A DNA stretch of 64,000 bases from Convolutriloba macropyga (GCF_964194025.1 NC_134482.1:36704001-36768000), one strand, 5' to 3'. Numbered from the stretch's first letter, positions 189 through 57,704 are shown. Translations and numbers: made by a program. Notes: generated by a model from the sequence alone, not told the origin.

Positions 189-4553
<4,365 letters not shown>

Positions 4554-11512: not shown

Positions 11513-12481
11513 AGAGATGAAATAAAATACTGATGAGGAAGTTTCATAGTCGACGGTTTTGAAATACCAGATTTTCAACTGTGAGAACTACTTTCCTGGA
11601 ACAAAAATCTGCAAAGTTTTCAAAATTAAGATCTTCCTACAGGATAACGATAACATATAACTGGTGTTACAAATGAAAACTATTCTGAAAAGAAGTAGGT
11701 GAAAACGCCCTCAGAACTAAAATTTTTCCAATTGGTCCCAATGCAAAACTTAGAAGATTTTGAACTTTTTTAGCTTAAGAATATTGATGACTGTATAATG
11801 CTACCAATTTTCGTCTAACAATCCCATATGAGGTCACTAGGATTTTGGAATATTCCAGATACACGGAACCATATTAAAATATTTTTTTAGCAAAGCACGG
11901 TTAGGAAAAAGTCAACAATACGCTTAGAAATAGAAGTTTAGGCTTCTGATCTTGCTTGCTCCAGGATTTTAATCCTCTTTAGAGTCCAAATTATTGGTTT
12001 GTAAATAAAATGCAGCCACCGCATTTGCAGTATGCCCTCCGCTTCCTTTTTAGTGATTTTTTTATCTTGTAAAGATTTAGATTCCGGACAAGAACGTTTA
12101 CGTAGGTTGTGAAAAAGTTTCGCACGTCTGAAAAATTTGGCACCTGATCTATCTAGTCTAGTGTTTGAAAGATACTTTTCCCTTCTATTATATTGCTTTG
12201 TAATTTCAGAGTTAGACTGTTAAGTCATCCTGCGGCGTATTGAGGAAAGCAAGTAGAAATAGAACATCGTGCATTTCAGTGCAGAGTGGTAATAGATCTA
12301 ATTTCATTAGTCGTTGTTTATTACGCAAAACTGATCAAAATATTCTCTTTGCGGCTTGTTTTTAATCTTTTCCAATTTTTGTCATCTTTCTATTGCTGGC
12401 ATTCCAAGAATGCGATGCAATGTTTACTATGGGTACCACATATCTTGTACACGCGCTTAATTTACTGTAAAGCGAGCAGTT

Positions 12482-13016
12482 CCCAGGCTGAGGTGCCAGA
12501 CGGAAGCAAGTATGTCCAGACCGTCCCAGACGGAAAGTACCTATGTCCAGACCGACCCAGACGGAATTTGCCTATGTCCAGACTTTCGTGCGTTCGCCAC
12601 ACTTTCGTGCGTTCATGTCCAGAATTTCGTGCGTTCACCAGACTTTCGTGCGTTTATGTCCAGACTTTCGTGCGTTCACCAGACTTTCGTGCGTTCATGT
12701 CCAGACTTTAGTGCATTCACCAGACTTTCATGCGTTCACCAGACTTTCGTGCGTTCATGTCCAGACTTTCGTGCGTTCACCCAACTTTCGTGCGTTTAAC
12801 CATTTTTCGTGCGTTCATGTCCAGATTTTCGAGCGTTCATCAGACTTTGTGCGTTCATGTCCAGACTTTCGTGCGTTCACCTGCAGTATTATTTGCTTTC
12901 ACCAGGTTGATATTTTTTGATGTCTCCAGACTATGTATTTTTGAACGCACGACGCCGCCTCGTGCGTTCATCTTCGGTTTGGACATACTTGCTTCCGTCT
13001 GGGAACTCATCCTGGG
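12482..13016 (+). mobile_element. Non-autonomous TIR transposon (CCC...GGG ends, 41-bp TIRs, TT 2-bp TSD; CMC/EnSpm-like) carrying a 19/22-bp minisatellite
   Basis: Left TIR cccaggctgaggtgccagacggaagcaagtatgtccagacc matches the reverse complement of 12976-13016 with 4 mismatches. Internal array of (tgt)ccagactttcgtgcgttca at about 12574-12880. Superfamily inferred from termini and TSD only. Confidence 0.88.
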
Positions 13017-36943: not shown

Positions 36944-38238
36944 ATGGCCAAACTGGTGGAGCATGTTTTGATCGGTGAGTTGTTTTTTTTAAGATTAATG
37001 CGATTAGCTCCGGGAATATTTTTCAGAGAATCACCTGAAATAACCTCAAGAATTTAACTTATTATTAAATTACTAAGTTATGAAAGCTTTTTGAAGGTTA
37101 AGGGGACAACCTGTAAATTTGAAGCGTTACAAATTTTGCAGAGAGCAAAAATAGGAAAGCTTTATTTTCACTTCAAAAACTTTTTTGTAAGTTGAATGTG
37201 ATGATTGAAGTAATTTTTGTTTTTTCATCCAACATCCTCCCCTTAGCTCACATAATTTAACTGCTATTCTCAACCAATTATAAACAATTTTCCGGTTAAA
37301 AAATCTCCGGTGATACCTCGGCCGGGGAAGCGATGAAACCTCGACCTAGTTTTCCGCTCCGAGTACTTTTGTAGACAAGATTATAATCTTTCTGTTCCTT
37401 AGTTTTCTAATTTTTTATTATATCTTTTTCTATTTGGGAAAAGAGGTTGCTTTGGGAATAAATATGCTTTTATTTATTTCCAGCGTCGGCGCTCATTTGC
37501 ATTTCGTGCGTGGTTGCCACATCGACTACTTTGAGTCCGAACGCGACAGATGCAAACGTGACAACCGCAGAACCCTTAGTCTTCGACGATGATATTCGGA
37601 AATCTACAAAAGCACTCGGATTTGAGGCGTACATGCTTTCGAAGGACACTTTGCGAGCATGCAACAAAATAAATTACGTCACAATGGAAATCGAAGAAGA
37701 ATCGGCCGATGGGAGCGATGAGGTGGGATCCGATAGCGAGGCCGCGAAGAAAGACTCAATGTTCTCTTACGGATTCATCGCGATTCAGGTCAGTGACCTT
37801 TATGACGTCATCAAAGAATGCAACGAGACCCTCTCCGATGGCGAAAATGACACCGACTCAATTTGGGACCTGACAGACCAGATTGTTGACATTATGGAAT
37901 CGGGTTCTGCTAACATCACCGATATCCTTTCGCTTTTCGAAATGGTAAAGAACGACACCGCTTTGTATGACTCGGCTATTTCCGAATGGTCGAAAAAGTT
38001 GACAAAGTTGGCAATGAATGTGATCACGGCGGCGCGGGACGCTTACAAAATGGTTCGGGACGATTCGGAAAGCGGAGCCGAGGCGGTTGACGACGCGAAA
38101 GACGCGATGACTGAGATCAAATACATGGCGGGTAAAATCAAACAACTTGCAAAAGAAATGGTCGATCACAAAGATGAGATCTACGAAGACATAATGGCTT
38201 ACCAAGAGACGGTTGAAAAAGAACTCGAGACTTACTGA
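36944..38238 (+). CDS. Orphan secreted acidic alpha-helical protein, 261 aa; exons 36944-36974 and 37484-38238
   Basis: aaaATGG start; donor G|GTGAGT; acceptor TTTCCAG|. The phase-1 join gives MAKLVEHVLIASALICISCVVATS (signal-peptide-like) in frame with ORF 37510..38238. GC content is raised relative to the flanks; six N-x-T sequons. Confidence 0.88.
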
Positions 38239-44596: not shown

Positions 44597-44773
44597 CTAC
44601 TCGATGTTGAGAACTTCGAATGCGTTTGGAGCCAGTCTTAGTTTCTGGAGAGGGTAATCGTGGAACTCGTAAGTGACTCCTCTGAATCTGGGAGTCTCTC
44701 CTCTCTCGTATCTGGAGTGATGACCACTGTAGAGCATCTTGCCATCCTCTTCACGCATTGACGTCACTTCACC
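44597..44773 (-). CDS. Tudor-TIR gene terminal exon 6 (missed by the ORF track)
   Basis: Acceptor TTTCTAG|; GEVTSMREEDGKMLYSGHHSRYERGETPRFRGVTYEFHDYPLQKLRLAPNAFEVLNIE*; aligns with the exon 3/4 repeat. Confidence 0.9.
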   Translation of the reverse strand, partial: GEVTSMREEDGKMLYSGHHSRYERGETPRFRGVTYEFHDYPLQKLRLAPNAFEVLNIE

Positions 44774-47700
44774 CTAGAAACTAACCTGAATTAGAGTATT
44801 ACAGCTTATTGGCAGCATATAAGAGCAGTTTGAAAGAAAAGATCGATTGACCTCAATATCTGTCCCAGATATTCATTTAGTGTTGTAAAATTAACACTGC
44901 TGTTGAAACGAAATAAGTTCTTTTTTTTCTGTCTTTTTTAAGGAAAATTATGTTAAATGTAGATTTTCGTAGATTCGGACGCATTTTGAAATAATTTAAT
45001 TGCGTTCCGACCAAACATATATAAGATAATCAGCGTTATAGGAAAACATTATACAGCCCAAATGGTACCCTAACCATTTTTTTATACTCAAGAAAGAGTA
45101 CAAGCTAAGAAAACTACAAAAAAGTAGAGAAAATTTGCAAATGATTCCAAAATTTGGTTCCTTCAATTCGGAATACACGCAATGATCATTAAAGGTCGTT
45201 GCCTGATTGACATTAACCGCGTCATACCGTGAAGAAATGGATCTGAAAAGGCTTTTGCTGGTGAATGCCTTGTGCGTGGAAAAAAAGCAAAAAGAAATGC
45301 TGACCTGTATTATTTAGCGAGCAATTGTTTGTTAGGTGATGATAGAAAGAATAGAGTGTTGACACTAAGCAGTACTATCAGAACTCTAAGTGTTCATTTT
45401 TCAGGCGGCTCATCGGGTTGTGACAAAAACGATAATTTAAGAAACTGGAAATTTTACATGTGTACCCCTCCAGTTTAGTGGATGCTCCCAAAGTTAAACC
45501 CTAAATGAATGTGATAGGTTACAAAATACGGGTTTGCAATGAAAAAAACATGTGTTTCATATCTGTTTAGCTAAAAAATATCCGGTTTAATAAAAGAATA
45601 GAAAAACAAACCTGGAATTTTTTCAATAAAATTTTTCATGTTTTTTTCCTGACAAAAATCTTGTGATTTTGTCTGTATGCAAAATTGGGCCAATCGCACG
45701 TGGCTACTATTCTAGGATGTGCTGAATCTTTTTTGATTAGAAAAACGATGGATGCACAAGTGACGCTGATTTTACGCCGAAATTTCATCCAGTTTGTCTT
45801 ATTTTTGATCGAAACACTTTTGATGTGTAAAAGGGAGTTTATTTCCTCATCTTCTTTTAAAAGAAGTTTGAAGAAGATGTTTTTTGAATGCTTTGCTAAA
45901 TGTTATTGAAATTTTTGGCTAGTATAAACTCTTTTTCTGTTCAATTCTTCTTCAGGAGCTCAGATAAAATATATTTGTTTGTGAAAATCATTCGTTTGCA
46001 TATCCCTTGTATGTGGTCTAACGCAAATATATTTTTTTCCTCATTGATTGACTGTTCGAAAAGACCTAATGTTGATGTCGGTCAAAAATGTTTTTTTTTA
46101 TGAATGAAGTAGAAATCTAATCAAAACTTTTTTCAGTTGAATAACATAACCATTAAACCCTGGTCGAGACTGGAATGTTATCTTGCAGTAATCTTACCAC
46201 TGACAGATAGGTCGTTGATATCTTCCGAATTTGGCAAAAAAACTATAATCTTGCAAGATTCGGCCAGAAAACGTCTTATCTGGCAAAATGTGCCAGGAGA
46301 ATGGCTATCTTGCAAGATTCAGGCAGAAAAATGTTTATCTTTCAAGATTCAGTTAAAAAAGAAAGAGTTCGTTACGTTTGAGCTGCATCTCAAATGTTTA
46401 ATAATATGTATTCTGCTTAAATTGTTCTCTCAGAAAATCATTTCCAGGTACAGTTTTCCTGTCGATCCTATAAAAGTGCACTAAAAATTTTGCAAAAGAT
46501 AAAACAGTGCTTGATAAAAATTTACTAGATATGATGGTTTACTGATTTACTTTTCAAAATTGTAGTTTTGTTTATATTTCACGTAGAGTACATGATATAC
46601 TTATTGTGCCTCAATGAAATACAAATAACACAACAAACGCAATTTCTTATTTTAGCTGTTTTTCAAATATTTTTTATTAGTTATTGCGAGAATACATTAC
46701 AAGCTCAGTTTGCGTTTTGCTTTTGCTCAGTTAACTAAAATAAAAAAGTTCCCAGAAAAGAATCAGTTTCGAAGCTATTCCCAGAAATGTTTTTATATCA
46801 TAGGAACCTTACAAAAAATTGTTATCTTTCGACAATCTGACAGAAATTAGATATCTTGTGAGACTCAGGCACAAAAACGGTTATATTGTAGTAACCTGGT
46901 AGAAAACTGGTTGACCTTGTTCTAATCTGACAAAAAATGGCTATCTTGTAAGAATCGGGAAAAAATGATTGTTTTATAGTAATCGGGCAGAAAAATGATT
47001 TTCATGCAGGAATCTGGCAGAAAAATGGTTATCTTGCAGGAAGATGCCAGACATTTTTGGCAGAAGTAAGAATCTGCCAGAATAGGATAGATTCCTACAA
47101 GATAACTATCCTTTCTCGACTAAAGAATACTTAGGAAATCTTTGTGTCAATTTTGAAACTGAATTTTTTTTTCAGTTAAGTTATGCTTTTCCCATAGCTA
47201 TTAACTATGTATACCAGTAAATGATTTTTGTTGACCCTTCTCTCAAACATAGCAAATATTTTATTTAAAAAAATGTATGCATACTTGGTAGGCAATGTAT
47301 AGTTCAGTTATGAAGAAACGCTGGCATCAAACTTAAGAAAAATCTCACACATACACATACACACACACAGAGAAATACTGGGTAGAGCCAAAACTGGCTG
47401 CTGGTGTCATCTGTAAATTAATTTGCATCCTGAGGCAAATTAAGCCTAATAAGCACTGGAATTTTAAAAAATTAAATTATGACCGACTTATCCGCATGTC
47501 TATCATTAGAAGAATCAGTTAACATTGTTTCGGATAAATTTAGAAAGTCTAATAAAATGTTTTCAAAGTTGATTTTTTAAAACAATTTAAGCCTCCAAAA
47601 ACGGTGATAACCAAGTGTCGAAGAATAAACCGAAAAAAGGTCCCCTTTTGTTAGATAACATAAGGAAAGCGCTCGCTGTTGGTTAAAAGAAAACAACTGA

Positions 47701-50700
47701 GTAAAGCAAAGATACAAAATTCAAAAAATGTATTTTTCTTTTTTGAAAATAGAACAAAATTGTCAACAGTGTGGTATGAACATCATATGTTGTAGCTACC
47801 CTGACAGACTTCTAAAACTGCCTGTTTAAATTGTTATCTGCGAAAAAATTGGTCTTTTAATAAATTTTTTAGTCTTCTTTCTGAAAAAGTCCAAAATTGA
47901 ACGTTTTTAGCGTTATGTAATGATTTTAATTTGCCTTGATGAGCTGTGATGACCTTGAGCAGTAATTTAGAGCAATATTTGGAGATTATATCAATCATTG
48001 AGGGGATTTGTTTTTTTTGGCTCACTTTCTATACTGATTTGTTTTTTTTTAATCCATGTTTAATTTTTCGACGTACTATTTTATGAGGAAAAATTTTCAA
48101 TCTACCGATAATTGGTCTTTTTCAAATCTGTAAAGAAAGTGACTAGTAATTGATTTGGCATGTGAATTGCGGGAAAGTAACAATAACGTTAATCCTCTTA
48201 CAAAAAATGAATCCAAAAAAACCTTTGAGGGCAAAAATTGTTAGCTTTCTAATTTTTTCCAAGACTAGTACGGTGAATGCCTAAATTCATTACACCAAAG
48301 AGCGTGTTTTCCAAATATTTCTCCAACGAAGCAAAATTACGAAAAAGCTGACGTCACTTGCCTCGAAGTATCGGAACCCAGAATAGTTCTCATCTGCAGA
48401 GTTCAACTTGTACTGTCCCTGAGGGAATAGAACAGTTGTCCCTACAGCTACATCCCCCTCACCCTCCTCTAGAAGTTCATCTTTAGCAGTCTCATTGTAC
48501 TTTACCACTCTGCCTGTTGTGTCTCCGTCGTCCCAGTCAACAGTAAAACACATCGTATCCTGTGCAAACATCATCATACCCGTGTCGAGGTTTTTGTGTA
48601 AATTTTTGTAAGAAATGCGATGAATGCGGTGAATTATTGTAAGAATTGCGGTGATTGCGGTGAATGCGGTGAAAACAAATATTTCATCGCATTTCACCGC
48701 ATTTCTTACGAAAATTCACCGCCAAACCTCGACCCGGGTATTTCCGTATGTGAGCCAGTTTAGTGTGATATTTTTTAAATTATTGTTTTTTTTCTGTTTG
48801 TACCCCCCAGGCCGCAGATGAAGGGGGCACAAAAAAGAAAAGAGGAGAACGTCGATGTTCATATTTTGAAATGCTTTGCATAAAAGTCTCATGCTATTTC
48901 TTACGAGGTAGGCACCAGACTTAAAATCCGATATCCTTGTTAATTTTGAGACAATATATCCATTTACGCTCAGACCCAATTATTTCAAAATCAAATCGCG
49001 CGAGATCTAACGAAAAATTTTAAAAAATGACAGGCAAATTATATGTCTCCATAATCTCTGACACGCCAAAAATTCGGCCTTATGCAATGGGATTTTGTGA
49101 GAAACAATTCCAGTTTTCTGAATTATTAGCCGACCAAGCGCTTAAACAATCATTAAGTGTTTATTGTATCTGAGAGGTATATGACTAGTTCTCATTGAAG
49201 TTTACTTAGGACAATTTATTTTCTCTAAGAATGAACTCAATTTTTCTAGAGAAACAGTTATCTGTTAAAAAAACTAATAGAAGTTAACAAAAAGAAACGA
49301 AAGTAAAGCTGATTTGCTATTTTGCTGTGATTCGAAATGTACAGTTTTCTTGGAAGGAAAACAAAAATTAACGCAGCTTAAAATAGAGAAGAAATATAGA
49401 GAGTGCATTGAAACGTTACCAGACAGGTGGGTATATGATGTGAAGGAACTGTAAGAGTTCTCCGAAGAGAAATAAAAAAATTTTTGTGACAAAAAAACAC
49501 AAAAAATTGAGTTCAGACAAGCAACCACTTGTGTATTAGGGTACAATACAGTCAGAAGGACTATTAATGTGCAAAACAGTTGTTCCTTAAATCTTTAAAA
49601 AATGTAAAAGTTCTAAGTTACTTAACAATTTTGAAAAGCTACGGTGATAAATAGCATTTTAGAGTCGAAGTACGAAATAATTCTCCTGTGCGTAAGTAAA
49701 AGATTGTCAGCAATATCTACAATAGAAGTAGTGTGGTCTTCTTCTCATCCTCGGGACTCAGACTTTAGACCAGATCACAAAAAATGAAAATTTCAATCAA
49801 TCGACTTATGGACAGACATGCTACACCAATATAGCTTCCAGGCCACTTGTAAAAAATTTAGGGTTTCACCATCCATCTAAATATGTCTTATAAGACCTGA
49901 ATATAACACTCAAACCCTGTATCGCACTTAACCTCTCATTTGTGATTCAAATATTCGGATCTATTCTGTCCCCCCCCCCCCCCAGCTTATAATTTTTTTA
50001 TGACCCCCAAGCGCATGTGCTATTTTCTTACATAGTAACCTGCTATATAACAACATTTAATTAATTTGTAACTGGGGGTCATAAAAAACACTGGGGGGGG
50101 GGGACAGAATAGATCTGCAAAAATTATCTCAGTTACTTTTTTGTCTGCCGGCGTTCATTGAGTTAAGGTCGGGACGCTGTTGACACTGATAAAATGAGGT
50201 TATGAACGATTTGTAAGTACCTTGTCATAGGCCACGATAGTTGAGAAAAAGAACTGTCCCCCCTGCCAGTGAGAAATAACATGGTCGCCAATCTTAGGAG
50301 CTCGGCTCTTCGTCTCAACCTGCTCCCGTCTCTCGAACACTTGCCCAGTAACGTTGTATCTCGAAATTCTGTTACAAATTTCTGTAATTTTACTTTGATA
50401 GTTGTATTCGTCATCTATTTCACGCATTTCAATTCGTTCGCTTCTTTCATCTTTTGCTTCGATTTGCCCCAGAACCATACCGACTTGTCGCTGCACCCAA
50501 TCCGCAGAACCCCGTTCGCCGACTATGATGGGTACCGTAGGAATCTTCATCGTTTTGACCGCGTGGTTAAACTCCATGTTACAATTCTCACTTTTACTAT
50601 ATTCCGAACTTATGAAGGTCAAAATGACTTGGGCTCCGGCTAAACCCTCAGCAATTTGTTCAAACATACTTGAATTCCGGTCACTTTGATTTGACGTTCC

Positions 50701-53700
50701 AAGCTGTTCAATGTCAAGCCATAATTTTTGACCTTGAAGTTGCCTCTCAACGTCCTTTTTGACCTTCCTCGGATCCGAATAGACACCACCCGCAACTTTA
50801 CGGATTTCATTAGCTTCGAATGAAAGGTAAGAATTCGTCCAGCAGTAACTTACAAAAACTGGGCACGGTTCCTTTTTGGGTTGTTGGGCAACGGAGTTTT
50901 GCTGATCTTCGTGAGGGCCACTTAGCGACTTTTTCATAGATCGTTCTAGCTCTTGCAGTTTTTGAGAGTACACAGTTTCATCTTTGAAATGGATGTAAAG
51001 CTCACCAGCGATTAATAACCCAATAACGGTTCTGGTCCAATCAAAACCATTCCCGACCACAATCGGAATTACAGGCACAGCTTTGGTCTTTTTAGCGAAC
51101 TGGAATTGTTGCTGACAACTTTCATCAGCGGCAAATTCGTTAGAAATAAATGCCAGAACAACTTTGCATTTTTGAATCATGATAGCGACCTCTTCTAATG
51201 ACGGGTTTCGGAACTTCAAGTTTGTTTTGATTCCCAAACTTTCCTCGACATCTGAAATAATTCGCATTGGGTTGATTTCTTTCCCTGAAGTGTTTTTGTT
51301 AGAATAGCACACGAACACGTCAAGGTCGAAGAAACGACTGGCGTTGGAACTGGTAGTTTCGGAGATGGAGCCCTCGAAGGATTCCAGAGCATTTGGCGAA
51401 ACTCGGAGACGCTCGATTGTGAGAGCTGAGAATGTCTGTTCGAATCCCCGATATGTTACCCATTTCCCGTCCTCCTCTCCAAATACGTGCTCACCATCGT
51501 AGAGGAATTTACCTATTAAAAAAATTAGAGCAGTATTTTCAGAAGCTTTTAAATCCAGATGTCACTTTAAATCCCTATTATGGTACCCATTTGCCGTCTA
51601 ACTCCCCAAATGCGTGTTCGCCAGCGGAGAGAAATTTACTTGTTTAAAGGACCAAGAGCGCCATTTTTAAAAATGTTATATGCCAGAAAAACAGAAAAAA
51701 AATAAAATACAAAATGATGCTAAAAGCTTGATTGATAAACAGGTTTTTATCTGTTTGGGACGGCTTCCCTATTTCCAAACTGAAACTGTCTTACAGAATT
51801 CGAGACGCAACCAGAAATTCTAAAAAAATATAATTTATTAGACTAAATGTGAATTTGTACGTCAGTTTCAAAAATTTGACTTAAACCAACTTGTTCTTTG
51901 AAAATCAGCTTTCCGTGTTTTCTGTTTAAAAACTTATTGTCTTGGATCAAATTTTAGATAAATTTTCTTCGCTCTCATACAGCTACTAACTACCATTTAG
52001 GTAACTAGGTAACAGCTGGCAATTGTTCAGGTAAAAAGTAGCGACATTGAAACTGCCCCCCCCCCCCCACCCCGTGCAGAGATCTTGAACAATAATAGCC
52101 GGTCTAAAACGGGAACTAGTGCCCCGATCGGGCAAATTAAAAGGTTTCATTTGGTGCTCATTTCTTTTTTGTATAACGCATTATTTCGATCATCCGGCCA
52201 GATTCAAAACAGCCACTGTAACTAATCAATTAAGCGATATTGTTATAACAATCTAATTATCAACACCTCTACAACAAATAGCAGTAATTCGTAAGAATAC
52301 AACAACACATAAATCGAACTAATTCGACGATGACTGGCATCTTATACCGCTTTTGTACGCTATCGATTTCTTTAAAAACCCACACAAAATAATTTGCAAA
52401 ATTTTTGCAAGTTACCGAGCTTCTCAATCACTGAAAAAAACGCAGGTAACTCAAATATTCTAAGTTGAGAGTTGAAAGGCGTTTCCTAAATTGCTCTAGA
52501 AAATTAAATTTACAGAAGGCAGCGGCTGTCAACATCTCGCTCTCGCGTTAGATCAAAATAATTGCAGCAACGGTTAGCAACGATTACAAGTGCCTTTTCC
52601 TCTGTCTACAGCAATAGCATTTTCGGCCCTAAGATTGAATAACAACCTTATCATAGTAATAATTTTCTGCGACGAACTCATTGTTAAGCCACTTTCAATC
52701 CCAGCAAAGAATTTGCTTTTGCGCACAAAGAACCAACCGTCATTGTGGCACAGAGCCTTTTTAATTTCAATTATACCAGTTCCATCATTACGCCCTTAGT
52801 AAAATTTAGTCAAGATGGTCGACAAATGGATAATGAAACTTTAATTTCCGGACCAATTAAGCGTTTTGGGGTCTTTCTGGTGCCTGGAATTGATCGCATG
52901 GGTCCAGTAACTCATTCATGTAATCCAGTAGTTCATTATTGGCATCAAGACTGTGGTTGTGAACAAAAAGGGGGCGGACAGCTACTGGGTCTCAAATTGT
53001 CAAATTTTTGCACAGGCTTTTCGCACAAAACTTTATATTTATATTGGCTTGCCAGGGGAACCGGAAAACTATGGGAAAGCTATGCAGCAACGAAGATTCC
53101 TCGGTGCTGGCTATCTCTTCATTCTCAAAAACCTTTTTATCTCAGATTCTAGCCCACATGCCCTTCTTTCTCTTCTCCAGTTACAATTACTTTTAATTTA
53201 CTAACCCTTCGATAGTTATGCTCACTTTGACTTGTTAGTTATTCACAACTGATTCTAACGCAATTTAATTAAATATGGTGATCTCTAACCATGGTTCTAC
53301 TAAGTTGACCGCTAGTTGTGTTTGTTCATTAACAATCTATATTGACCCATTCTGGTTAGTTCAATTTTACAGTACAGAATGACCGTTCTTCTGTAATTGC
53401 GAATCCCACCTTTTATTTGGTAGTACAAGACATAACAAATGCTAAAACACTCATTTTTGTTTCACATAGTGATATGACAACAGAAAATTAGTTTTCCAAA
53501 AAAAAAATAAAAAAAAAAGAAACAGTCCCAGGTTGAGGTCCCAGACAGAAGCAAGTATGTCCAGACCAAGATGAACGCACGACGGGGACGCGTGCGTTCA
53601 AAATTACATAGTCTGGAAACATCAAAAAACGCACGAAAGTCTGAACATGAACGCACGAAAGTCTGTCGAACGCACGAAAGTCTGGACATGAACGCACGAA

Positions 53701-56700
53701 AGGTCTGTCGAACGCACGAAAGTCTGGACATGAACGCACGAAAGGTCTGATGAACGCACGAAAGTCTGGACATGAACGCACGAAAGTCTGAACATAGTCC
53801 TAAAGAACGCAATGTTTGATAAACAAACATTAGGAACGTTCCTAAAGTTTGTTTATCAAACATTGCATTCTTTAGGTCGATGAACCCCCCCCCGCTCACT
53901 GTAAACTCTCAACGGGTGGTTTTCATGTCTTTTATCTCTTAATATCAGAGAAAAATTCTGTTCAATTTTCTAAATTTGTTCACAGTACCATCGGGCGACT
54001 TTGATATGTTTGTGATGCGGCCCATGTGCCATCGAGTGCCCCCCGATCTGTCCCCACTGGCGCCATAGGAACCCTGTTGGAACAGGACATTGCTACCCAC
54101 TCCAATCTCTGCCACTCCTGGTACCTTGTCCAAGGCAACGTCTGTCACCTGAAACAATTACCCACCTGAAATTTTTCTCTGTTGAGCGTGTTTTCATAAT
54201 TCAAAATTTTTTTTTCGAAATTTTTACAATTTTTCATGATTTTGCTTTGAACATCATGGGAATCAAAACCAAGAATGCTCGCTCTATTTTCAGAAAAAAA
54301 GTATCTATGGGACTTGTACTGAACATCATGAGTAGGAAGATATTCTTAGGATACACTGATACAGTACTGGGCCGACGATATACAATTGGAATACAATGTT
54401 TCAGCACTGATTTACTACGGCACTAGGGTCCGGGAAGCCCGTGAGAACAAACGACAGCAAGTTATTATACGCCAGGAAATACCTAAATAGTTATTGCCCA
54501 AATAGTTACTTAAAATGCCTTATCAGAACTGGCATAAATTAGTAAGCGAATTTAAACCTTATAGCCGTTCCCGGGCCGAGGTATCACCATAAATCTACCT
54601 CACAATTACCAGGGTAAAGGGTGCATTAGTCAATACAGTCCTTATTATGAGTGAAAAAGTGTACTTTTGAAAAATTGCACTGGGTTTACACTTTTGTCAG
54701 TCAGTTTTCGTCGATTCGATTTATTCAAGGTGGAGATTGTGAGTGGTATCTTTAGAAATCTTGTCAAGCGTAGAATATCAAATTAATAATTTTTTCTTTA
54801 AAATTTCTCTTTCTCTAATGAATTACAAACGTTTGAAATGATATGAACATTAGGCTCACTTATGCTGCTTTGTTAAAGTTTTTCAAAATTTTCGCCAATT
54901 TTTTGACCAATTTTAATGAGAAAGTGCTAAAGTTTTAATGATATCCTCGTTTATTATTCGTTTAAAGACAAAAAAGAAATGCTTAACTGTTTGAACCAAC
55001 ACTTTTGGCTAAGATTTTGCCTAAAGTTTGGACAATTTAACAATATTTTCTCATTTTTCATGAAAAATGGCACCAAATATGATTCCTTAGTCCATTGAGA
55101 CCAAATTTAGCAACAATGCAGTACAAAACATTTCTGGAACGACCTTTGTTTAATAACACGAGGAATAATTGTACCTTCGGTTTCGAAGAAAATGCTCTGG
55201 ATCTAACATTTTGGCTGCGTTTCCCTGATTTATATCGATATTTAGCAAAACTGCATTAATTCTTTTTTGATATATTAAGAATCTTGTTAGCTAAAATCTA
55301 TACCGCAATAATTGGGAACAATGTTGTTTTTTGGCAGCCGCGCAGTGATAGCAAAGTCAGTTTTGGTCTCATCGTTGAGTTGCTCGACAAAAAGGATTTT
55401 GAAAAAGGTTTTTGAAAAGAAAAAGGTTTTTGTCTAACCTATTTACTATATTGTTTTTTAAGTTGCCTCTTTGTGGTGCGCCACTTTTCATTGTTTTCTG
55501 TCACCTTTAAGCGTAGTCTAAGTAAAGAAATTGTTAACGTCCTTTTTAAGTGAATTTGTAAAGTTGTAAATTTGTCTGCACTGCTGTTTTATCAATTATG
55601 GGATGATTTTTTTGGATTTGATCCTAAGAGTTTCATAATTTTTTGCCATTTTCGGATTTTTCCAAATTTTTGTATCTTTTTGCTGGGTTCTCCAGTCGTC
55701 AGATTCATAACAAATGAAACACCACACTAATGGAGTTGTAACAAGGTTTAATGGTTAAATTTAATGTTTATTTTTTGATCGGTTTTCTCACAAAATTTAA
55801 CTGACTTTTTGATCTTTGCCAGTCCGGCTTCTTTTTTAAGTTATATCTTGATCACGATAAAAATTTAGGTCTCGAGGGTTTCCTATGTAGGTAAAAATGA
55901 AACAAATTATTAATTTCAGTTGATGGATAATTCAAAGAAATTATTTGTTCTCAAAAGTATAAACGTTTTTTTCATCATTACCTTTTTTGTTTTTTTTTGT
56001 AATTGTCTACACGTTAATTTTGTTCAACAAAGACAGGTTTCATATTTTTGATGCTGAAATAAAATTCAATTTGTTTAGTTTTTATTTTATTTTCTGCTTT
56101 TGTGACTTTGTTATTAAGTTTTTTGTTAAAAAATAGATGAACAATGAGGTTTGGTCCTATTTAATACTTTTTCTTATCATTTGATTTTGTTGTTAGTGTT
56201 ATATCCAGGCTTATCTCCTTTAATGGCAAGTATCATCAGCCATTTAAGAGCCATTATTCATTTTGCTTAGTGGTTTGAGCTGAAAGCGATTTTTAACTTG
56301 AGACATCAATTATTTTCGAATAATGTAAGTTTTTTGAAAATTTCCTATCTCTTCCTCAATGGCAGACAATTAAGTCAAAAATGTGTTAGAGCTGTGTCGC
56401 AACATTATGTGCAGTCGAACATTACCGATGCCTCTTGTTTGTTAGAAATCTGTTTATGATACTATCTTGCAAGCGAATGCGTACGGGTTCTAAGATATTT
56501 GCAAGATTCTTTCGATTATTTCGACACGTTGGCACGAATGGAGCAAGCGTTTTGATTAATTTTGCAATCTTTCTTATTCATTTTCTAAGTCTTTTTTATT
56601 CATTTTGCAAAAATTTTTATTCATTTTTTGAGCTTTTTGATTGATCCTGCAAGTTATCTTAGAAGATGAATCGAAATGGTAGAAAAATTCTTGCAGGTGA

Positions 56701-57704
56701 ATTGAAAACCTCCGAGAATCTTCCATTCTTGCAACTTGATACTAGCATTCAATTGACCGACCATTTGGGTGAAAACCGTAAGTAAAACATGATCAGGTCA
56801 TCTTCGTGGATTCAAGAGGAAAGTCTGTGATCAAAATTATGTTGTCTGGATCTCCGTTCGATCGCACGAAAGTCTGTGCAATGGCCTTAAATGAGCCTGA
56901 ACAGAGGTCATTATTGCCTCGGTGGTAAGGTCACCTCGAATGATGTAATCATGGCACTTTAAGAGACTCTGACCTTAACTACCCGACCATCCGGATCATT
57001 GTCGTCCCAAGTGATGTGGAACTCCTGCTTATCCTTGTCCAGAGAGTCCACCCTGGCAGGGAAGTACTGGTGCTGGAAGTACTTGGCATATATCTTGTCT
57101 CCCACTTTTGGGAAGTTCGACTGGACCATTCGCTTCTGCATTTCCTGTCTGAGAATCTTCCATTTTTGAAGGTCAACTCCTGGACAAAATGAAAGAAAAT
57201 GGACTCGTTGCTAATTTTTTTAGCGTTATTTATGTTTTGAAATTACGCATCATCCTAACTTTTATTTTTATTGTCAATTGTGAATAAAAAACCATTCAAA
57301 TGAATGGTGTTCGCTGAATTTTTTGGTACGTGCTGTATCACCAATTCAACGATTGTCCAATAAAACGATTTAATTTTAATATAAAACGCAGAAAACGAAA
57401 ACAGAACTATCTCATCATTGATCGTGGAACCAACGTTTAAAGTTTGAACACTGAAACGAAATACGAAATTTAAAGTTAAGATATCTTAATCTCTTGTATA
57501 TTCAATCTCAAACCAGAACTTAAATTCACGAATATTAAACAAGTTTCTCTCGATGTTATGAATCTATGGGTTTAATAGACATATCTATTTTTCAAAATCA
57601 ATTTAGATAGTTAGTTATAACTAGGTTTATAACAAGTTATACTTACCAGCTACAGTTAGTTGGTTTTCGACTTCTTCGACTAATCTCTTAATTTCTGGGT
57701 CCAT
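44597..57704 (-). CDS. Tandem-Tudor-like / TIR / TIR / tandem-Tudor-like protein, 696 aa; exons 57704-57647, 57179-56974, 54148-53989, 51512-50221, 48559-48362, 44773-44597
   Basis: Exon lengths 58+206+160+1292+198+177 = 2091 nt, with phases 1,0,1,0,0 giving one open frame ending in TAG. Two TIR folds (DVFVCYS; PVFVSYCW..WLDIEQ..SEYSKSENCNMEF). The N- and C-terminal halves are internally homologous (PK(V/I)GD..WDD.D..GRVVK..VG..VLF.QG.Y..DGK.LY.G.H..RG..LR+.PNA.E). Confidence 0.9.
46158..47126. mobile_element. Degenerate TIR element with subrepeats of about 30 bp (gttatcttgcaagaatctggcagaaaaatg-like), in intron 5
   Basis: Left end gtcgagactggaatgttatcttgcag versus right end ctacaagataactatcctttctcgac; subrepeat clusters at 46170-46350 and 46830-47080. 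Confidence 0.6.
48362..48559 (-). CDS. Tudor-TIR gene exon 5, ending at a GC splice donor
   Basis: Acceptor GCACAG|; DTMCFTVDWDDGDTTGRVVK...GTTVLFPQGQY...FRYFE; donor GAG|GCAAGT. Confidence 0.88.
48579..48738. mobile_element. 160-bp foldback MITE, CCCG...CGGG, flanked by TA
   Basis: ta|cccgtgtcgaggttt ... aaacctcgacccggg|ta, with the internal inverted pair gtaagaaatgcg / cgcatttcttac and tgcggtga subrepeats. Confidence 0.85.
49956..50117. mobile_element. 162-bp MITE with poly-C/poly-G TIRs and an imperfect 8-bp TSD
   Basis: cggatctattctgt(C)nag..ttttttatgaccccca versus tgggggtcataaaaaa..ct(G)nacagaatagatctg; flanks caaatatt / caaaaatt. Confidence 0.82.
50221..51512 (-). CDS. Tudor-TIR gene exon 4 (end of Tudor 2, both TIR domains, start of Tudor 3)
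   Basis: Acceptor TTTTAATAG|; extends ORF 50200..51318 upstream by 64 codons (KFLYDGEH...LRVSPNALE...DLD); donor AAG|GTACTT. Confidence 0.94.
53527..53795 (-). mobile_element. Truncated second copy of the 12482-13016 minisatellite TIR element, in intron 3
   Basis: TIR cccaggttgaggtcccagacagaagcaagtatgtccagacc, internal hairpin and tgaacgcacgaaagtctgga units; the other TIR is missing. Confidence 0.88.
53799..53876. repeat. 78-bp spacerless palindrome
   Basis: cctaaagaacgcaatgtttgataaacaaacattaggaac|gttcctaaagtttgtttatcaaacattgcattctttagg; 2 mismatches in 39-bp arms. Confidence 0.92.
53989..54148 (-). CDS. Tudor-TIR gene exon 3 (Tudor-like domain 2, first part)
   Basis: Acceptor TTTCAG|; VTDVALDKVPGVAEIGVGSNVLFQQGSY..TRWHMGRITNISKSPD; donor ATG|GTACTG. 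Confidence 0.9.
56974..57179 (-). CDS. Tudor-TIR gene exon 2 (Tudor-like domain 1)
   Basis: Acceptor TTTTGTCCAG|; PKVGDKIYAKYFQHQYFPARVDSLDKDKQEFHITWDDNDPDGRVVK; donor AAG|GTCAGA. Confidence 0.9.
57647..57704 (-). CDS. Tudor-TIR gene exon 1
   Basis: aataATGG; MDPEIKRLVEEVENQLTVA; donor CTG|GTAAGT; phase matches exon 2. Confidence 0.72.

Follow-up and report, generated by a model that had tools for sequence, protein, structure and literature searches.

A six-exon gene on the minus strand

The stretch of DNA analysed here (the window) is 64,000 nucleotides long and comes from the acoel Convolutriloba macropyga (GCF_964194025.1, NC_134482.1:36704001-36768000). Its minus strand carries, from 57704 to 44597, what is almost certainly one intact gene of six exons for a soluble protein of 696 residues, in which a tandem Tudor module stands at either end of a pair of TIR domains (Table 1). 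A preliminary description of the window, made from the sequence alone, had joined the pieces into one 696-residue frame with a module of about 150 residues at both ends, had assigned these modules to the Tudor-Tudor type and the middle of the protein to two TIR domains, and had seen no transmembrane segment, signal peptide, LRR, death, SAM, ARM or Roc-COR region. All of these claims were borne out by the results given below. Its further claims, that the layout is symmetric, that the protein is of an uncharacterised type and that it may be a ligand-gated TIR enzyme, are taken up with the TIR domains, with the family and with the possible function, respectively.

The gene model was built from the list of open reading frames (ORFs) and from three-frame translations of the minus strand, and splice sites were chosen to hold the frame. 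The joined coding sequence is 2091 nt long, that is 696 codons and a stop, and it contains no internal stop codon or frameshift. Four of the five introns are GT-AG and the remaining one is GC-AG, with its donor at 48361 in a good context (GAG/GCAAGT). Two RefSeq proteins of C. macropyga align with the frame from its first to its last residue, LOC142340808 (698 aa) with 75.7% identity and LOC142338555 (697 aa) with 60.8% identity. Both begin with MDPEIK as exon 1 does, and all five exon junctions are ungapped in both alignments. At the junction made by the GC donor (GFRYFE/GEVTSMR) the residues are identical in the closer of the two proteins. Complete ORFs with the same layout are present in the de novo transcriptomes of several choanoflagellate species and, thus, the architecture occurs on single mRNAs in other species. 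Over 48250-54200, four public sequencing runs covered introns and exons alike at an even depth of ~20-30x and showed no joint from one exon to the next, and these four runs are therefore genomic DNA.

Table 1. The six-exon gene, the domains that it encodes and a decayed exon copy in its third intron
Feature	Coordinates	Strand	Content and remarks
Exon 1	57647..57704	-	Start codon at 57704; residues 1-19 and one base; GT donor gtaagt; first helix of the N-terminal helical segment, probably a coiled coil
Exon 2	56974..57179	-	Residues 20-88; completes the helical segment and carries the first Tudor barrel of the N-terminal module
Exon 3	53989..54148	-	Residues 89-142, last codon split; begins the second barrel of the N-terminal module; colinear with relatives
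Exon 4	50221..51512	-	Residues 142-572; completes the N-terminal module (LRVSPNALE tail); both TIR domains with a linker between them; then a helical linker, after which the C-terminal module begins
Exon 5	48362..48559	-	Residues 573-638; completes the first barrel of the C-terminal module (WDDGD) and begins its second; GC donor at the exon end
Exon 6	44597..44773	-	Residues 639-696 and stop; completes the second barrel of the C-terminal module, with its LRLAPNAFE tail
N-terminal tandem Tudor module	51367..57132	-	Residues ~36-190; interrupted by introns 2 and 3
TIR1	50902..51351	-	Residues ~196-345; codon at the catalytic position CAA (Gln277), 51106-51108
TIR2	50407..50871	-	Residues ~356-510; codon at the catalytic position GAG (Glu455), 50572-50574
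C-terminal tandem Tudor module	44600..50316	-	Residues ~541-696; interrupted by introns 4 and 5
Decayed partial copy of exon 4	51560..51637	-	In intron 3, ~50 bp upstream of the real exon; noncoding

An artefact that joins separate genes, or a pseudogene, would be in keeping with the one GC donor, with a join that was drawn from homology, and with the 356-aa product (P0001) that fragmented gene calling gave in another assembly. Against this stand the ungapped end-to-end alignments to two RefSeq proteins that were predicted independently, the complete choanoflagellate ORFs of the same layout, and the 2091 nt that run without a stop or frameshift, and we regard an artefact as extremely improbable.

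The highest mean of any 19-residue Kyte-Doolittle window in the protein is 1.34, inside a beta strand of a TIR domain, and no transmembrane segment or signal peptide is apparent in such windows. LRR, death, SAM, ARM and Roc-COR gave no Pfam match either in the pieces of the window or in a Convolutriloba relative.

Two further copies of exon 4 were seen. One, 99% identical, lies at the end of a 69-kb contig in another assembly (ENA ERZ25071359, contig ctg30398_55x_l, 65889-69385; L001), where it is called as a stand-alone gene for the 356-aa P0001, and automatic gene calling thus fragments the locus. The other is the decayed copy in intron 3, which by tblastn and translation corresponds to the first 26 codons of exon 4 (KFLSAGEHAFGELDGKWVP, followed by two in-frame stops and GF) with 65% identity over these 26 residues. 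It resembles a pseudo-exon left behind by a small local tandem duplication.

Tandem Tudor modules at both ends

When the N- and C-terminal modules, of ~150 aa each, were aligned with each other, 53 of 151 columns were identical (35%) and the local score was 237, as against 31 ± 5 with a maximum of 56 for 500 shuffled controls. The internal repeat is therefore far beyond chance. The motif IGDHVISHWQGGQFFFSTIVAYDK/DTMCFTVDWDDGD is present and straddles the junction of exons 4 and 5. Single pieces match known Tudor families weakly: the piece encoded by exon 2 matches Pfam Tudor_3 and PTM_DIR17_Tudor with E values of 0.0025-0.0065, below the cut-off. In seven of the eight homologues that were scanned, Tudor_3, Tudor_2 or PTM_DIR17_Tudor was above the Pfam cut-off at one or both ends. 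A family profile made from 40 N- and C-terminal modules was searched against PDB sequences, and its best match was the Tudor domain of KDM4A (E 1.8e-6), followed by PHF20L1 (6e-5) and then by PHF20, KDM4C, SGF29 and 53BP1.

The modules of the window protein are split by introns, and the N-terminal module of another Convolutriloba protein, P0004, which is 63% identical to that of the window, was folded as a stand-in. The AlphaFold 2 model of this module is all-beta, with a predicted local distance difference test score (pLDDT) of 92.3 and a predicted TM-score (pTM) of 0.85. In a Foldseek search of the PDB its top matches were the tandem Tudor domains of 53BP1, UHRF1 and SETDB1, with probability 1.00. 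With VIA-align the match to SETDB1 TD1-TD2 reached Z 11.9, at a root mean square deviation of ~3 A over ~120 residues, and further matches were UHRF1 (~9), SAWADEE (8.8) and SGF29 (8.4). Among Swiss-Prot models and in the ESM Atlas the N-terminal domain of capicua and FMR1/FXR were also found, and the TM was 0.64-0.66 to the capicua and SETDB1 clusters. A word-indexed search with the same region of P0004 gave close acoel relatives as its only matches. As judged from the model and the profile, the flanking modules are tandem Tudor folds with two consecutive SH3-like barrels.

Tandem Tudor readers such as SETDB1 TD1-TD2, the tandem Tudor domain of UHRF1, 53BP1, SGF29, KDM4A and capicua share this arrangement of two barrels, but the identity to them is only 11-19%, none of them is known to be fused to a TIR domain, and the present family has in addition an insertion of its own (DGKWVT) and a tail, LRxxPNA, that does not vary. 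In the family alignment the first barrel has aromatic columns, F/Y in 39 of 40 modules (twice) and W/F in all 40, that adjoin the invariant Asp of WDDGD. The second barrel has the highly conserved QGxY, R-W/Y-H-x-G and YxGxH, and the insertion and the tail belong to it. These conserved columns would fit a ligand pocket with a putative aromatic cage.

In a tree of the modules a single ancient split into N and C was not resolved. Eight label changes were counted, with three truncated proteins wrongly labelled N. The N modules of cnidarians and Ciona cluster together and so do their C modules, and the N and C modules of the same protein cluster with each other in three choanoflagellates. Ahead of the N-terminal module, the full-length model of P0004 has helices at 2-18 and 23-38 with low pLDDT, and the N terminus of the Choanoeca flexa protein gave weak, below-cut-off Pfam matches to coiled coils.

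An asymmetric pair of TIR domains

Exon 4 matches Pfam TIR_2 twice (E 1.4e-14), and the two domains, TIR1 and TIR2, are 30% identical to each other. The full-length model of P0004 has a pLDDT of 80 and a pTM of 0.58. Residues 200-345 of P0004 (TIR1) match the TIR domain of Hydra TRR-2 with Z 15.0 and those of RUN1/RPV1 with ~14, and residues 357-530 (TIR2) match MyD88 (Z 14.8), TLR15, SPARTA (14.3) and SARM1 (14.2). Both thus match solved TIR domains at Z 13-15 over 120-140 residues, and both central domains are canonical TIR folds. A feature search of the ESM Atlas gave bacterial TIR clusters only, below threshold with a score of 0.89, which is a lead and not evidence.

The two domains differ at the position of the catalytic Glu. 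The family signature of TIR2 is FVSYCWTNS, DPR, WLDIEQL and SSEYSKSENCNMEF, in this order, and the motif around the Glu is S-x-E-Y-x-x-S-x-N-C-x-M-E. Glu455 of TIR2 aligns with the Glu of AbTIR (WTNYELD) and with that of Cat1, a CRISPR-associated TIR protein. This position is Glu in TIR2 of 19 of the 21 family members, whereas in TIR1 of the same 21 it varies (Glu in ten, Gln in seven, Leu in two, His and Val in one each) and is Gln277 in the window protein. The symmetric layout that the preliminary description had seen is therefore found in the flanking modules and not at the level of the TIR domains, and the same asymmetry is present in the Roc-COR-TIR-TIR proteins described below.

A family older than animals

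Homologues were sought with exon 4 by word-indexed search and by exhaustive HMMER search, and the four parts of the protein were then mapped onto all matches. The order module-TIR-TIR-module was present in more than 20 of the full-length proteins matched, which are 650-850 aa long. Besides the two RefSeq proteins of the acoel C. macropyga, there are members in the cnidarians Actinia, Desmophyllum, Acropora and Stylophora, in the ctenophore Pleurobrachia, in the sea urchin Lytechinus and in the tunicate Ciona intestinalis. Members also come from eight choanoflagellates, among them Salpingoeca rosetta PTSG_10079 and Monosiga brevicollis A9V6F2, and there are proteins of S. infusionum, S. macrocollata, S. 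helianthica, Didymoeca costata and Choanoeca flexa. The Tudor-TIR-TIR-Tudor family is older than animals. No vertebrate, arthropod or nematode protein was among the named matches, but most matches are unnamed and absence from these groups is not implied.

The claim that the protein is of an uncharacterised type stands in part. In our literature searches, whose coverage did not extend to the classification of invertebrate TIR proteins by Gerdol et al. 2017 (Dev Comp Immunol 70:145), we met with no description of a Tudor-TIR protein, no name for one and no citation of a member's accession. On the other hand, the family is already in the databases, from choanoflagellates to tunicates, where its members are annotated only as uncharacterized protein, 'TIR domain-containing' or 'Tudor domain-containing'. 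It may already carry an ecTIR-DC number in Gerdol et al. 2017, and in papers citing those 'ecTIR-DC' families no Tudor-bearing family is described. The sequences are thus public and the domains are visible by automatic annotation, and what appears to be undescribed is a Tudor type of candidate sensor on TIR sensor-effector proteins.

The same TIR pair in LRR-Roc-COR proteins

The best matches outside the Tudor family are proteins of 1300-3300 aa in which TIR1 and TIR2 are matched colinearly in a single stretch. By Pfam these giant invertebrate proteins are LRR-Roc-COR-A-COR-B-TIR-TIR with the TIR cassette at the end, and three of the nine that were scanned (P0050, P0064 and P0065) have MBT repeats. 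One of the giant proteins, P0058, has a PLAT domain upstream. An alignment of 18 of their cassettes with that of the window has FISYCWxNS, DPR, WLDIE and SDEYAxSxNCxMEF in common. As in the window protein, the Glu is kept in TIR2 and the position in TIR1 drifts, but the giant proteins have LRR, a Roc GTPase and COR and are without tandem Tudor modules. The class called 'ecTIR-DC 14' in PMC6321704 probably corresponds to them.

It follows from these alignments that TIR1 and TIR2 form one evolutionary unit, which has been joined to different front ends, as is expected of an effector module. Since the cassette lies beside royal-family methyl-lysine readers in both contexts, Tudor in one and MBT in the other, this is a modest and independent hint that the link to the readers is functional.

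Possible function of the protein

We propose, tentatively, that the protein is a ligand-gated sensor-effector that acts independently of Toll and MyD88, with TIR1 as a partner and TIR2 as the catalytic domain. The two tandem Tudor modules would read ligands, and methyl marks on the Lys or Arg of proteins, for instance in histone tails, are the likeliest candidates. Several molecules would be brought together either by a multivalent ligand or through the short helical segment at the N terminus. TIR1 and TIR2 would form a built-in asymmetric pair in which TIR1, with its Gln here, is the non-catalytic partner and TIR2, with its near-invariant Glu, is the active subunit. Once clustered, TIR2 would cleave NAD+ or a related nucleotide, and the outcome would be a signal or the depletion of the pool.

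In the resistosomes of plant TNL proteins, as in SARM1 and AbTIR assemblies, the active site is made by asymmetric TIR pairs, and a pair with one active subunit is known from the plant TNL systems RPP1, RUN1 and RPS4/RRS1. RPP1 was the best Foldseek TIR match of our full model, TIR1 matches RUN1/RPV1 as given above, and S..Y..S..C..E is common to both. In the plant proteins, however, the pair comes from separate chains through an NB-LRR oligomer, whereas the window protein has both TIR domains on one chain and Tudor modules on either side. SARM1/TIR-1, an animal TIR protein, is likewise soluble and has its Glu at the homologous position, and the TIR domain of SARM1 matches TIR2 with Z 14.2. 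SARM1 differs in having ARM, SAM and a single TIR domain, whereas the window protein has two TIR domains, no ARM or SAM, and Asn in place of a Trp.

This Asn is one of several points that weigh against our proposal. Asn451 of TIR2, four residues before the Glu, is invariant (20 of 20 in the column) and aligns with the Trp of WTNYELD in AbTIR, an enzyme that makes 2'cADPR. A Trp four residues before the Glu is common to SARM1 and plant TIR domains (WCxxE in plants). Structural similarity was rejected as a means of telling enzymes from adaptors, since both kinds score Z 13-15. The contact between TIR1 and TIR2 stays putative at a full-length pTM of 0.58, the aromatic cage is a prediction from alignment columns, and the exon join is drawn from homology (RefSeq colinearity and choanoflagellate ORFs). 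The remaining point is an experimental one. In a preprint (10.64898/2026.04.20.719644) many eukaryotic TIR domains were tested in E. coli, and animal TIR domains outside the TLRs that have the Glu can make cyclic ADP-ribose (cADPR). The nearest assayed relatives are its domains #137 (Dimorphilus) and #136 (Rotaria), both of which are second TIR domains of Roc-COR proteins. Residues 1748-1864 of P0076, a Dimorphilus protein of 2178 aa, have the same sequence as domain #137, which is 36% identical to TIR2 of the window (E 6e-29). Neither #137 nor #136 gave cADPR isomers or NAD+ depletion in E. coli (Table S4 of the preprint). The negative result is weak because these second TIR domains were isolated, without the partner TIR1 and without clustering, and it is still the sole experiment that bears on this lineage.

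Both TIR domains could instead be non-catalytic interaction surfaces, like those of MyD88 and MAL, in a scaffold that the Tudor modules tether to methylated partners, for example chromatin or proteins of the Sm/PIWI type. The likeness to MyD88 is in keeping with such a scaffold: both TIR profiles match MyD88, weakly (E 0.02-0.07), MyD88 is the top structural match of TIR2, and it has no Glu aligned at the catalytic position (FQTKFAL opposite MELQFAL of the family), just as TIR1 has Gln there. The invariant Asn at the Trp position of AbTIR and the inactivity of the closest assayed domains point the same way. But the Glu of TIR2 is retained in 19 of the 21 members of the Tudor family and in all of the Roc-COR cassettes, and its counterpart in TIR1 is free to vary, and this is the pattern expected of a catalytic residue and not of a generic interface. 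By Pfam the window protein also differs from MyD88 and the TLR adaptors in having no death or other adaptor domain. Moreover, the usual TIR partners, TLR and MyD88, are absent from lineages that keep the gene. Acoels are reported in a 2026 study to be without TLR, MyD88, IRAK and NF-kB (PMC12849515). Choanoflagellates are without MyD88 and IRAK, and the partners of TIR in their proteins are given as Ank, Arm and SH2 with no mention of Tudor (PMC6040629). Since the family is kept in lineages that lack the classical TIR partners, and has two RefSeq members in Convolutriloba, a self-contained function is suggested rather than the role of a Toll adaptor. We consider a scaffold somewhat less likely than the proposed enzyme.

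The conserved Glu together with the replaced Trp would also be compatible with a TIR2 enzyme that acts on a substrate other than free NAD+, namely NAD-capped RNA, or RNA or DNA in the manner of the plant TIR 2',3'-cyclic nucleotide monophosphate synthetase, with the Tudor modules targeting ribonucleoprotein or chromatin substrates. The negative cADPR/NAD+ assay of the nearest relative and the presence of the Tudor/Agenet relatives FMR1/FXR among the structural neighbours of the module would agree with this, as would NAD-RNA decapping by TIR proteins, which is reported in PMC10937652. However, no nucleic-acid-binding domain was detected by Pfam in the window pieces or in the homologues, and we regard such a substrate as improbable.

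The proposal of a ligand-gated pair with a catalytic TIR2 can be put more broadly, in a form that we consider unlikely as a whole. In it, a pathway older than Metazoa, independent of Toll and MyD88, would have readers of protein methylation (on histones or on Arg) that directly gate a TIR enzyme. The state of chromatin, or methylated viral, transposon or germline proteins, would be converted into a signal derived from NAD+ or into local depletion of NAD+, and the 'pseudo-TIR + catalytic TIR' would be a single-chain version of the activating asymmetric TIR dimer of plants and bacteria.

Other features of the window

Three stretches in the introns of the gene, 48620-48740, 49960-50100 and 53424-53821, have a summed contig depth of 10^4-10^5 in the DNA runs, as compared with ~25 elsewhere, and are very high-copy repeats in the genome. 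A minisatellite-like repeat is shared by 53462-53899 (-) in intron 3 and 12286-12920 (+), which are ~40 kb apart on opposite strands. It translates as RAFMSRLSCVHQTF within spurious ORFs of 125-145 aa and coincides with the stretch of highest depth. At 3318-3680 (-) lies a protein kinase exon of a neighbouring gene (Pfam Pkinase, E 2.3e-22) with HRDLKPSN and, in the activation loop, a TPY motif, which we take to be the signature of a JNK-type MAP kinase. An acidic ORF of 242 aa at 37510-38238 (+) has no significant Pfam match (NleF-like at E 5e-4 is below threshold) and could represent either a gene of one exon or one large exon.

Significance

TIR domains are known to act as enzymes in bacteria and plants and also in certain proteins of animals, and little has been established, to our knowledge, about what activates the many 'orphan' animal TIR proteins. 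In the family described here a conserved TIR cassette lies between two copies of a domain of the type that is known to read methylated Lys or Arg, and the sister cassette is paired with MBT, which has the same job. If the link to the readers is functional, the reading of epigenetic marks or of protein methylation would be tied to TIR signalling. With a soluble protein of ~700 aa and accessible carriers such as Salpingoeca rosetta, Ciona, sea urchins and acoels, the family would be a tractable model. It has persisted in lineages from which the Toll pathway was lost, and such animals may thus still use it as an immune or stress route.

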